A DNA stretch of 64,000 nucleotides from Phaeosaccion multiseriatum (Eukaryota > Protista > Ochrophyta, other classes): assembly GCA_965112735.1 (NCBI GenBank), contig OZ218955.1:2790001-2854000 (forward strand), in the 5' to 3' direction. Below are positions 58,100 to 62,658 of this stretch, piece by piece. The notes under the pieces were generated by a model. It searched no databases. It was given only the letters and a program-made list of their open reading frames with translations, and was not told where the DNA came from. Each line of letters starts with the position of its first letter. Positions within the stretch are counted from its first letter, which is position 1. Made by a program: the position numbers and the translations under genes.

Positions 58100-61000
58100 A
58101 TGCCGTCAGGAGTAGGTGGAGGCCTCCCTGCGATGGGGCAGAAAAGCTGTGAGGCCACGGATGGTAGTAATGAGGGCAAGAGTAATAGCACGAGCAGCCG
58201 GGAAGATTGCGCCTCTCCGACCCATCCACGACTGCTGCTGAATGTAGACTTGCAACCACATCAGCACGTGGACTTGCAACAGCAGCAGCACCACCCGGTT
58301 CAGGCGACTTCATCCCCTGCCAACAGCAGCAGCAGCAACAACAACACGAGAAGGAGCGCAGCTGCGGCTGCGGCTCACGGGGTGCTCAACCTGAGCTCCC
58401 AGAGCGCCGCCTTGGTGCTTCAGGCCGTCCACTCTCCGCCCCTCCCTCTCGCGGGCACTTTGGAGTGGGAAGAGGCCTTGGTGGCTGCAGGGAAGGCAGA
58501 GGTGAGCGGGACAGGAGGCCGAGAGGGGCGGGGGAGGTTAAGAATGGTTTTTTCACAGGCAAGGAGGAGCGAGGACCTGATGTCCCTCGCTCACATCTCT
58601 CCGAGAGGAAAGACTTTTCATACCCTCGACCTATGCCACACAGCTGCTGCTGCGGCTGCTGCTGCTGCTGCTACTTCTCCTGCTCCTGCTCCTCCTGCTG
58701 CTCCTGCTGTGCGGCCCTTGACCTATGCAACTCGCTGCTGTTGCTGCTCTACTGCCCCCCACCGACCCCTTAGGCCCTGCGTCGCCTTTGCCAGCCCGCC
58801 ATGGCTGCGAGCGGAGCGCTGGCAGAGGCCGACGACGACGCCTTCTTCCTCGTTGACATCGGCACCGTGCTACACAAGTACAGGAGGTGGGGACAGTGCT
58901 TCCCGAGAGTCAAGCCCTTCTACGGTGAGGGAGCAGTTTAGAGGGAGGGTGGGAGGGAGGGAGGGAGGGAGGGAGGGAGGGAGGGAGGGAGGCTCTACCG
59001 GTTCTTGTTGGGCCAAGGCCGATTCCCCCCCCCCTTCCCTCAGATGGGACGACAAGCACACGCATACACACACACACACGCAGCGACACACACACACACA
59101 CACACACACACACACCCACCCACACACACACACACACACACACACACACACACACACACACACACACACACACACACACACACACACACACACACACACA
59201 CAGGAACCCTCCTGGCAAGTGAAGCGTTCGCTGCTGCCGAATCGCACTGCCACCCCCTCCCGTGCCTCCTCAGCCGTCAAGTGCAACCCCTCACTCCCCC
59301 CCCCCCTCCCATCCACTGCCATCCCCTCTCGTGGTGCGTCAGCCGTCAAGTGCAACCCCTCACTCCCCCGCCCCCCCCCCCCATCCACTGCCACCCCCTC
59401 TCGTGGTGCGTCAGCCGTCAAGTGCAACCCCGACCCGATGCTGATCCGCGCCCTTTCCATGCTGGAGGGCAGCTGTGGATTCGACTGCGCAAGCGTGGCC
59501 GAGATCTCACAGGTCTGGTCTGTCTGTTCCGTCAGCACTCACTGCCCGTAGGCCTCTGTGTCTGCGCTGCCCATATACCCGGCCTTCATCCCCATTGGCC
59601 CTGTCTTCATCCCCATTGGCTCTGTCTGCGCTGCCCATATACCCGGCCTTCATCCCCATTAGCTCTGTCTGCGCTGCCCATATACCCGGCCTTCATCCCC
59701 ATTGGCTCTGTCTGCGCTGCCCATATACCCGGCCTTCATCCCCATTGGCTCTGTCTGCGCTGCCCATATACCCGGCCTCCATCCCCAGTAGCTCTGTCTG
59801 CGCTGCCCAATGCCTCTCTGGTCAGTGGCCTTCTTCCTCTTCGTTGCCTCATGTGGGCCTCGCACACCTGCTTGACCTTTGCCATGTCGTGACCTGACCT
59901 TTGACCTTTGCGTTTGTGTGTGTGTTCTCTCTGTGTGCATCTCTCTCTCCCTTCTCTTTGTGTGTGTGTGCGTGTGTACCTGTGTGTGTGCGTGTGTACC
60001 TGTGTGTGTGCGTGTGTACCTGTGTGTGTGCGTGTGTACCTGTGTGTGTGCGTGTGTGATGGCGTGCAGGTGTTGTCGTGCGGCGTGCACCCCTCGTGCA
60101 TAATATTCGCTAACCCTTGCAAGGGCCGGGCAGCACTGGACTACGCCTTCCGCGGTGAGGCATAAGCAGGATTATTAACATACTGCGATTTCGCGGTTGA
60201 GTGGCACTTTTGATGGGCCATGAATTGACTTTGACACCACGTGACCTTGATTTGATCACGTTTGAAACCCCTGTTTGACCCCCTTCTGCTCCTGTCTACC
60301 TCCCCTACCTGCGCTCCCCCTCGTCTGTCTGCACTGCTTGTGGTCGGGCTCTTCGTCCTCCCCCCCCGCCCTAACCCCCCCCGCAGTGGGAGTGAGAACG
60401 GTGACGTTCGACAGCGCAGGCGAGCTGCACAAGATTCGCGCTTTCCTCGATAGTATGGACATCCGCGGCAGCCGACACGAGGACGGCAGCAGCGGTGCAG
60501 ATGGGGGTGCGGTTGGCGACGACGTGATGCAGATGGTGCTTCGGCTTCGAGTGCCCGACGATGAGTCCGAGTGCCCCCTCGGGGAGAAGTTCGGGGCAAC
60601 TCTGGACACGTGCAAAGAGCTGGTGAGACGCATACACACACGCACACACACACACTCCAACTACACTCACGTGTACCGACTTGCGTTAGCTTGCCTCATT
60701 GCATTTTCACTCACGCGCTCATCCCCCCCCAATCGCCCGACTGTACGGCCTGCACACTTCGCTCTGCCGGGCAATGTGTGTGTGTATGTATGTCGTTTGT
60801 GTGTGTCTGTTTGTGTATCTACGTATGTGTGCGTATGTGCGTGCGCGTGTATGTATCTATACATATGTGTGTTTGTGTGCTTGTCAGATCGGGCTGTGTC
60901 TATCGCTGCAGCTGCCCCTGGTGGGCGTGAGCTTCCACTGCGGCAGCGGGTGCCACAACGCCGAGGCCTATCCCGAGGCCATCCGACTGGCCAGACTAGG

Positions 61001-62658
61001 TGCGTGCGTGTGTGTGTGTGTGTGTGTGTGTGTGTGTGCGGGTGTGTGTGTGCCGTCTTTGTGCGGGAGGGCCCATCTTATATACACCCCTTCGATCATG
61101 TCTCTGGGTCTTCTACCTCCTCCCCCTGCTGTCATCAAATGCCATCTTCTGCCTTCCGTCAGTGTTCGACTTGGCCGCAGAGGCAGGCGTCACGTTGTCC
61201 CTTCTGGATATTGGAGGAGGATTTCCGGGCTGGGATGGAGAGGAGCATGTTTACTCACAACAAGCAGCAGCAGCAGCAGCATCATCATCAGTTGGTGATA
61301 CACAAGCAGAAACAGCAGATTGTACACAAGCAGCAGCAGTTGGTGCTACAGAAGTGGACTGGGTGCTACCGCTATCTCTGAAGGACGTGGCCAAGTGTGC
61401 AGTGCCGGTGCTGGACGAGCTTTTCCCGCCAGGGGGGGGCGTGCAGGTAAGAGGGGCCCAGCCAGCCAGCCAGCCAGCCAGCCAGCCAGGCAGGCAGGCA
61501 GGCAGGCAGGCCGGTAGGAAGGACTGAGAGGCGGAAGGAGGAAGGGAGGGAGAGGATACGTGGTCTAGCCATCTTCTCGGCTTTGCTGATGCTTCTCTCT
61601 CTGTGGATGTGTCTCTGTGTGTGTATGCGCGTGTGTGTTCGTGCATGTAATACTGTGTGTGTGTGCGTGTGTGTGTGCGCGCGTGCGCCTAACCACCTCA
61701 GCTCATTGCGGAGCCTGGGCGCTACCTCGTGGAGGCTTCCCACGTGCTCTTCACCAACATTTACGCCGTCCGCCGCTGCCCACCGCTACACACGCCCATC
61801 GGGGACGAGGCAGAAGCAGAAGCAGCTTGTGATACAGCAGTTGGTGATACAACAGTGTCACAGATGGCAGTGGAAGTCAAGAGCGGCGGGAATGGGCAAG
61901 AGATGGGGGGGCAGACACTCTTGCAAGAGCTCGTGGCACCACAAGCAGCAGCAGCAGCAGCAGCAGTAGCAGTTGGTGATACACCAGAGTCACGGATGGT
62001 AGCGGAGGGGGCAAGAAGGGGCAGCACGAGCAAGAGCAACAGCAGTAGGGGCCGCCTCGCCTACTTCATCGGGGAAGGCGTGCACGGCTGCTTCAAGGAC
62101 AAGCTCCTCTGCGGGGTCAAGTTCGAGCCCTTTCCCCTGGCGGTAGTGCGACGGTTCGAGCCCAAGACCGAGCCCCGACCCCAAGAAGGGCAAAGGACAA
62201 CACAGACCATTGATGACGACGGAAATAGATGCATTTTCCACTTCGACCAACATCACCATGACGAGAAGCGAGACAAAGAGAAGGAGAAGGAGCAGGAGTT
62301 TGGCCTGGTGGAGAAGGAGAAGGAGGAGAAAGAGGAGAAGGAGGAGAAGGAGGAGAAGGAGGTGGAGGAGGAGAAGAAGAAGAAGAAGGAGGAGGAGGAG
62401 GAGGAGGAGGAGGAGGAGGAGGAGGAGGAGGAGGAGGAGGAGGAGGAGAAGGAGAAGGAGGAGGAGGAGAAGGAGGAGTGCCTGGTCATCGGTCCAGCAG
62501 AGGACGTCGTGGCTGAGCTGGGGCCCGGTGTGCTGCCTTGCATGGTGGCGGGCGATTGGCTGTACTTTCTAAGGATGGGGGCGTACACGACCTCCATCGC
62601 CTCTGTGCAGGAGTCCAACGCGTGTAGGAACGAGCGGTGCTATGTATTGAGCGCGTGA
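58100..62658 (+). CDS. ODC: Ornithine decarboxylase-like protein (fold type III PLP), atypical active site, multi-exon
   Basis: [12 protein letters not shown]|[62 protein letters not shown] and [19 protein letters not shown] is replaced by IGPAED. Confidence 0.88.
59554..59810 (+). repeat. Intronic minisatellite, ~43-bp unit (CTCTGTCTGCGCTGCCCATATACCCGGCCTTCATCCCCATTGG), 5-6 copies
   Basis: Visible directly. Confidence 0.9.

Follow-up and report, generated by a model that had tools for sequence, protein, structure and literature searches.

The stretch of DNA considered here, 64,000 nucleotides of contig OZ218955.1 of the alga Phaeosaccion multiseriatum (positions 2,790,001 to 2,854,000; 'the window' below means this whole 64-kb stretch), carries on its + strand, at about 58100-62658, a spliced gene for a protein of the ornithine decarboxylase (ODC) family from which the catalytic cysteine of ODC is missing. 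ODC catalyzes the entry step to the polyamines. Seven exons, all with GT donors and CAG acceptors and with phases that agree throughout, give a protein of 623 amino acids. The parts of the gene, and segments within its last exon, are as follows.

58100..58708, + strand: probable 5′ coding region, with the N-terminal strand of the sheet domain and a low-complexity insert, in a frame that stays open from ATG 58100 onward.
58801..58924, + strand: exon 1, the conserved segment FFLVDIG...RVKPFY; translation could alternatively begin at ATG 58801.
59415..59512, + strand: exon 2, AVKCN with the pyridoxal phosphate (PLP) lysine K69 (codon 59420-59422), D88 and E94; assigned from PF02784 positions 24-52 and the residue table.
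60070..60154, + strand: exon 3, the IFANPCK segment; PF02784 positions 55-79.
60387..60622, + strand: exon 4, R154, K169 and G171, together with the equivalent of the antizyme-binding element and an insert of ~25 amino acids.
60912..60999, + strand: exon 5, H197 and S200 (FHCGSG); PF02784 at 25.3 bits, over the cut-off.
61163..61446, + strand: exon 6, the phosphate loop G235-237 (DIGGGF), with an insert of ~44 amino acids that holds two copies of a dispersed 15-base motif.
61702..62658, + strand: exon 7, E274 and R277 (AEPGRY), the specificity helix, the Cys-loop, GAYT and the stop codon.
62086..62115, + strand: specificity-helix segment with K327, D328, L331, C332 and G333, the signature of an ochrophyte clade.
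62491..62505, + strand: loop GPAED where standard ODCs have GPTCD, the Glu codon (62500-62502) being at the position of the catalytic Cys360.
62584..62613, + strand: Y389, kept (62584-62586), and Gln and Glu at 397/398 (62608-62613).

Translated singly, the exons from 59415 on match PF02784 in colinear order and the end of exon 7 matches PF00278, the short length of the exons keeping most of the PF02784 scores under the curated cut-off. This order, a barrel domain (Orn_Arg_deC_N) followed by a sheet domain (Orn_DAP_Arg_deC), is that of the ODC branch of the alanine racemase (AR)-fold, or group IV, PLP decarboxylases, and the orthologues dealt with below also carry both domains. The translation of exon 1 (58801-58923) had no match in Pfam; its identity with brown-algal and Chrysoparadoxa orthologues is 67-79%, and that of exon 3 with brown-algal orthologues is ~70%. 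At the 5′ end the start at 58100 is probably right, since the frame is open, residues at about 58436-58501 match an N-terminal motif of the Pylaiella orthologue P0107 (E 4e-4), and the orthologues have 58-90 residues ahead of their segment equivalent to exon 1; an intron of ~65 nt (58709-58773) would restore the frame between the 5′ region and exon 1. Exon 7 holds, in addition to its conserved segments, a repeat-derived insert of ~90 amino acids and a Glu/Lys-rich tract of ~70. The inserts are treated as coding because hidden introns, considered as a candidate explanation and rejected, would have no good donor, and because relatives have inserts at the same sites. No second copy of ODC was found in the 64-kb window.

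Residues were numbered with T. brucei ODC (whose chain numbering is the usual ODC numbering) and frog ODC as rulers, the window exons being aligned as separate fragments. The PLP set is complete (K69, D88, E94, R154, K169, G171, H197, S200, G235-237, E274, R277, G387 and Y389), and the barrel motifs AVKCN, HCGSG, DIGGGF and EPGRY, reported as intact in the first-pass annotation of this DNA, are indeed all present. Altered are Y323H, Y331L, D332C, C360E, F397Q and N398E. The absence of Cys360 had likewise been read correctly from the loop GPAEDVV, which in a phmmer comparison with solved structures aligns to GPTCDGL of T. brucei ODC (chain residues 357-363) and so places Glu at 360, where canonical eukaryotic ODC has its catalytic Cys. 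The same applies to the replacement of FNG after GAYT by VQES, Gln and Glu occupying the places of the canonical Phe397 and Asn398 (FNGF after GAYT). The canonical substrate-site set (Asp332, Asp361, Tyr323, Tyr331) is not retained, H323, L331 and C332 being present instead. The identity of the single Asp of GPAED depends on the alignment: it is D361 when no gap is allowed, and D364 when placed by the DVVA motif of the closest relatives, in which case three residues are missing ahead of it and D361 is absent. A change in the substrate loop had also been claimed and, though the substrate positions are altered, the change was misplaced, as the loop equivalent to NDGVYGSFN holds Y323, not D332, and the true position 332, 12 residues past the Glu that had been cited, is Cys. 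A switch toward arginine of the D332E type known from the PBCV-1 enzyme is rejected, since the Glu sits at about position 320, not 332.

Homology searches were done exon by exon and with reference orthologues, relatives being named here by their source labels. An exhaustive HMMER search with exon 7 against 1.84 billion proteins yielded 102 matches, the best of them in Choristocarpus, Hapterophycus, Ectocarpus and Chrysoparadoxa. For five of the window exons the top match is a brown-algal or Chrysoparadoxa protein, and for the other two such proteins are among the top matches; a word-index protein search (exact 5-mers, length window) with the C-terminus of exon 7 and with exon 4 gave no match. 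When the Ectocarpus protein is the query, the matches listed include a single orthologue from each brown-algal species (Ectocarpus spp., Scytosiphon, Pylaiella, Laminaria, Nemacystus) and below these, still among the matches listed, only generic ODCs at about 250 bits. A second large group has the loop GPSGE or GPSGD followed by RMGAYTLSIA and, as Seminavis, Nitzschia and Entomoneis are among its members, can be equated with the diatom 'ornithine decarboxylase'; a protein of the raphidophyte Chattonella groups with members of the diatom type. Some of the sequences come from transcriptomes of the Marine Microbial Eukaryote Transcriptome Sequencing Project (MMETSP), so members of the clade are transcribed.

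In a maximum-likelihood tree of 76 rows, for which no root was inferred and on which only exon 7 of the window was placed (32% of columns filled), an ochrophyte clade of 42 rows has a support of 92 by the Shimodaira-Hasegawa-like approximate likelihood ratio test (SH-aLRT), and window exon 7 lies within a subgroup, valued at 98, with brown algae and Chrysoparadoxa. Judged by these comparisons the window gene is orthologous to an ochrophyte ODC-like clade that spans diatoms, raphidophytes, brown algae and Chrysoparadoxa. The Chrysoparadoxa ODC-like gene is colinear with it, with different neighbors, and a comparison of intron positions between the two genes gave no obvious match. The Chrysoparadoxa member is compact, at 480 amino acids, and its Atlas model (predicted template modeling score, pTM, 0.85) has an ODC-type fold.

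The features that set the window protein apart from ODC are for the most part not its own. Column counts for 52 clade members and 88 standard ODCs show no substitution of a PLP-binding residue in the 52, the one exception being position 69 in an incomplete sequence. The standard ODCs have N327, C328, F/Y331, D332, H333, T359, C360, D361, F397 and N398. The clade has K327 and D328 without exception (52/52 each), L331 (52/52), C332 (50/52) and mostly G333 in the helix; in the loop it has S359, G360 in 46 of the 52 with Cys in none (0/52), and D364 in all but one (51/52). FNG is lacking, positions 397/398 being absent or occupied by small residues. Given C328/D332 in the standard enzymes and D328/C332 in the clade, Asp and Cys have in effect been exchanged between two positions four residues apart on the specificity helix. 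GPTCD occurs in none of the clade relatives, for which reason reads that restore it in the window gene are unlikely. The window protein carries the helix signature in full (K327, D328, L331, C332). It departs from the clade in the loop, where relatives have GPSG, three further residues and then DVVAR, and the window protein passes directly from GPAE to DVVAE; the loop is ~3 residues shorter than theirs and is followed by 2-3 extra residues. Glu at 360 is also present in one other clade member, P0017. The window copy is thus a divergent member, with Glu360, a shorter loop and long repeat-derived inserts.

Outside the ochrophytes, Cys360 is also missing from ODC homologues of two glaucophytes, Cyanoptyche and Cyanophora, as well as of Diphylleia (P0116, P0118, P0128, P0070), where its place is taken by Asn, His or Gly; in these proteins D361 and FNG are retained, and Lys, Asp and Leu stand at 327, 328 and 332. 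The ODCs of Galdieria combine R327, D328 and L332 with a retained Cys360, a pattern which indicates that D328 accompanies a missing D332 even in a lineage that retains the Cys. Judged from such sequence comparisons, Cys360 may have been lost on more than one occasion.

The pattern suggests, with a probability that may be put at about 0.55, a working PLP enzyme whose distal-group site has been relocated and in which either protonation is non-standard or the outcome of the reaction is altered. The protein would still bind PLP and act as an enzyme of decarboxylase type. Binding of the distal group would have shifted to D328, with K327, and protonation at C-alpha would be by something other than Cys360, for which C332, K69 and a water molecule are candidates; or else it is the outcome of the reaction that would have changed. 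The first-pass suggestion of an altered activity or specificity in an alga is the one of its two proposals that fits better, the PLP site and the new pocket set being fixed across the clade. Ornithine is the default guess for the substrate, an unproven one, made because diatom members are annotated as ODC. In a review, one ODC gene and no arginine decarboxylase (ADC) gene are listed for Thalassiosira pseudonana (PMC6356823); the one listed ODC of this diatom, XP_002287587.1, may belong to the clade.

Several known proteins invite comparison. Eukaryotic ODC (EC 4.1.1.17; human, mouse and T. brucei; structures 1d7k, 7odc and 2tod) has in common with the window protein the two Pfam domains, the order of motifs and the PLP set; the window protein differs from it in being without Cys360, in the replacement of Y323, Y331, D332, F397 and N398, in the loss of D361 or D364 according to the alignment, in its helix (K327, D328 ... 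L331, C332) and in belonging to a separate, ochrophyte clade on the tree. Entamoeba histolytica ODC (4aib) has Y323H, as the window protein does, and is active with Y331F, D332E and D361N (PMC3543441), from which it follows that positions of the substrate pocket can be changed without loss of function; the Entamoeba enzyme, however, keeps the catalytic Cys and has no relation by descent to the ochrophyte clade. Substrate choice in the AR-fold family is determined by two elements, the specificity helix and the Cys loop (PMC7857480). The PBCV-1 arginine decarboxylase (2nv9) and the N-citrylornithine decarboxylase FigC (PMC7857480) resemble the window protein in that both elements are changed around a fixed PLP site, and differ in that all keep the Cys. 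Closest are the proteins annotated as ochrophyte 'ornithine decarboxylase' (Seminavis robusta; Nitzschia inconspicua KAG7363508.1; Ectocarpus fasciculatus CAM9285136.1; Chrysoparadoxa australica CAM9716060.1), which are orthologous by exon-wise best matches and by the tree and share K327, D328, L331, C332, RMGAYTxSIA and, ahead of the loop, acidic inserts that vary, and likewise have no Cys360; the window protein is unlike them in its Glu, not Gly, at 360, in the loop shorter by ~3 residues and in its longer repeat-derived inserts.

Several points weigh against a working enzyme. Activity without Cys360 appears to have no tested precedent; the C360 mutants of ODC studied by Jackson et al. in 2000 are reportedly much slower and divert to decarboxylation-dependent transamination. 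Assays of diatom or brown-algal ODCs were not found in the searchable literature. For the window copy itself, departure from the clade at 360 and in loop length, and the long branch of exon 7 on the tree (1.14), point the same way; of four sequencing runs that contain 71-77% of the words of the stretch, none is recorded as RNA. Finally, the Cys is described as conserved in all AR-fold PLP decarboxylases, with a catalytic role (PMC7857480). Set against that statement the ochrophyte clade is a real exception, and no remark on the missing Cys in this clade was found in the searchable literature.

One alternative is a dead regulatory paralogue, which would either pair with a standard ODC, leaving one good and one dead site, or sequester an antizyme-like inhibitor, in the manner of antizyme inhibitor (AZIN) or of trypanosomatid prozymes. 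In its favor, Cys360, D332, F397 and N398, all missing here, are residues by which one subunit completes the active sites shared across the dimer interface, and inactive ODC homologues arose many times in eukaryotes according to Ivanov et al. (2010), as relayed in PMC5574924 and PMC5518511. Replacement of ODC-essential residues is what the window protein has in common with AZIN1/AZIN2, with mouse ODCrp (PMC5518511) and with planarian ODC5/6 (PMC5574924), and the combination of an intact K69 with a lost C360 is that of planarian ODC5, for which heterodimers have been proposed (PMC5574924). However, a dead regulator is expected to lose the constraint on its cofactor site, as vertebrate AZIN1, which has lost PLP residues, has done (PMC3543441), whereas the window protein keeps them all, and both they and the new active-site set are fixed in 52 members from diatoms to brown algae; the ochrophyte changes are fixed across a very old clade and do not represent lineage-specific drift. 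Just one of the eight antizyme contacts (Q119, A124, N125, Q129, E136, V137, M140, K141; list from PMC5518511) is kept, namely K141, though a lineage-specific partner may exist. No standard brown-algal ODC is among the best 120 relatives of the Ectocarpus protein (weak evidence), and the Thalassiosira listing of a single ODC gene with no ADC would be in the same direction if that gene belongs to the clade. The first-pass proposal of a pseudoenzyme, or of a regulator comparable to AZIN or prozyme, is accordingly disfavored, with loss of the Cys being a fixed trait of the clade; an AZIN-like dead protein is unlikely on these grounds, and the regulatory explanation as a whole is considered improbable.

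A changed reaction, here treated as a sub-case of the working enzyme, would consist of decarboxylation-dependent transamination or oxidative deamination, with ornithine going to 4-aminobutanal / delta-1-pyrroline and not to the diamine. That the whole clade has lost Cys360 while its PLP site is intact agrees with what is reported for the C360 mutants mentioned above, and the conserved C332 and K327 could tune protonation. Yet transamination ends in pyridoxamine phosphate and is therefore not catalytic unless there is a recycling step, and no pathway need for the aldehyde product is known in these algae, which makes this specific outcome a rather doubtful one. Least probable is that the window copy is decaying or mis-modeled (as a recent pseudogene, through misassembly of the loop, or through introns mistaken for coding inserts): Glu360 and the loop indel are unlike 46 of the 52 relatives, and the long branch, the four copies of the dispersed 15-base repeat in coding inserts, the (GAG)n tract in exon 7, the triplicated acceptor ahead of exon 2 and the fact that none of the runs is recorded as RNA could all be so explained, but the frame is open over all exons with GT-AG sites and consistent phases, all PLP residues and all four signature residues of the specificity helix are kept, relatives have inserts of variable length at the same sites and P0017 shares Glu360.

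Should the ochrophyte 'ODCs' all be without the Cys and yet strongly constrained, either the textbook mechanism has an alternative that has gone unrecognized, or these algae make putrescine otherwise than assumed, and the clade enzyme does something new. The boldest form of the proposal is that the ODC of an algal phylum, diatoms and brown algae included, works without the supposedly universal Cys, the acid role having passed to Cys332 and the site for the distal amine to Asp328, and is the sole route to putrescine; this is rather unlikely. Polyamines build the silica wall of diatoms and are tied to reproduction in seaweeds. If the proposal were true, the clade protein would be the only route to putrescine and hence to the long-chain polyamines of diatom silica. 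The response to difluoromethylornithine (DFMO) would also be expected to differ, the main DFMO adduct being formed on Cys360. At the least, a residue checklist is an unsafe basis for declaring an ODC homologue dead.

Repeats are abundant in and around the gene. At 59245-59431 a 72-bp unit, present 2.6 times, contains the 3′ splice acceptor together with the start of exon 2, so that AVKCNP can be read three times in the same frame; the three acceptors lie within 59270-59414, and splicing to one farther upstream would lengthen the protein by 24 or 48 residues. Simple repeats abound in introns 1 and 2 (58941-58992, 59057-59202, 59605-59809), including (GAGG)13, (CA)72 and a 43-bp unit present 4.8 times, and 59948-60060 is a TG-rich intron repeat. 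The dispersed 15-base motif, GCAGTTGGTSATACA, has 28 copies in the window where 0.02 are expected, those in the coding inserts of exons 6 and 7 being at 61288, 61336, 61837 and 61969. The Glu/Lys-rich tract (62260-62480), directly ahead of the active-site loop, is encoded largely by a (GAG)n microsatellite; the acidic stretches that relatives have at this site are shorter and variable in length.

At the 3′ end the stop codon, TGA, lies within a good donor-like sequence, GTGAGT (62655-62660), and the C-termini of orthologues are 5-25 residues longer than that of the window protein; a further 3′ exon beyond 62658 may be present. Directly past the stop codon, at 62668-63295, is a minisatellite of ~40 bp units built on the same 15-base motif.

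A different gene arrangement is found in Chrysoparadoxa australica (CAXMZZ020000928.1, L001:497-3453), in which the ODC-like gene is preceded, at a distance of ~650 bp and in the same orientation, by a gene for 811 amino acids. This upstream gene fuses an aspartate 1-decarboxylase domain (PF02261) to methyltransferase domains, a counterpart of which does not adjoin the window gene, and such a fusion would suit the synthesis of beta-alanine betaine.

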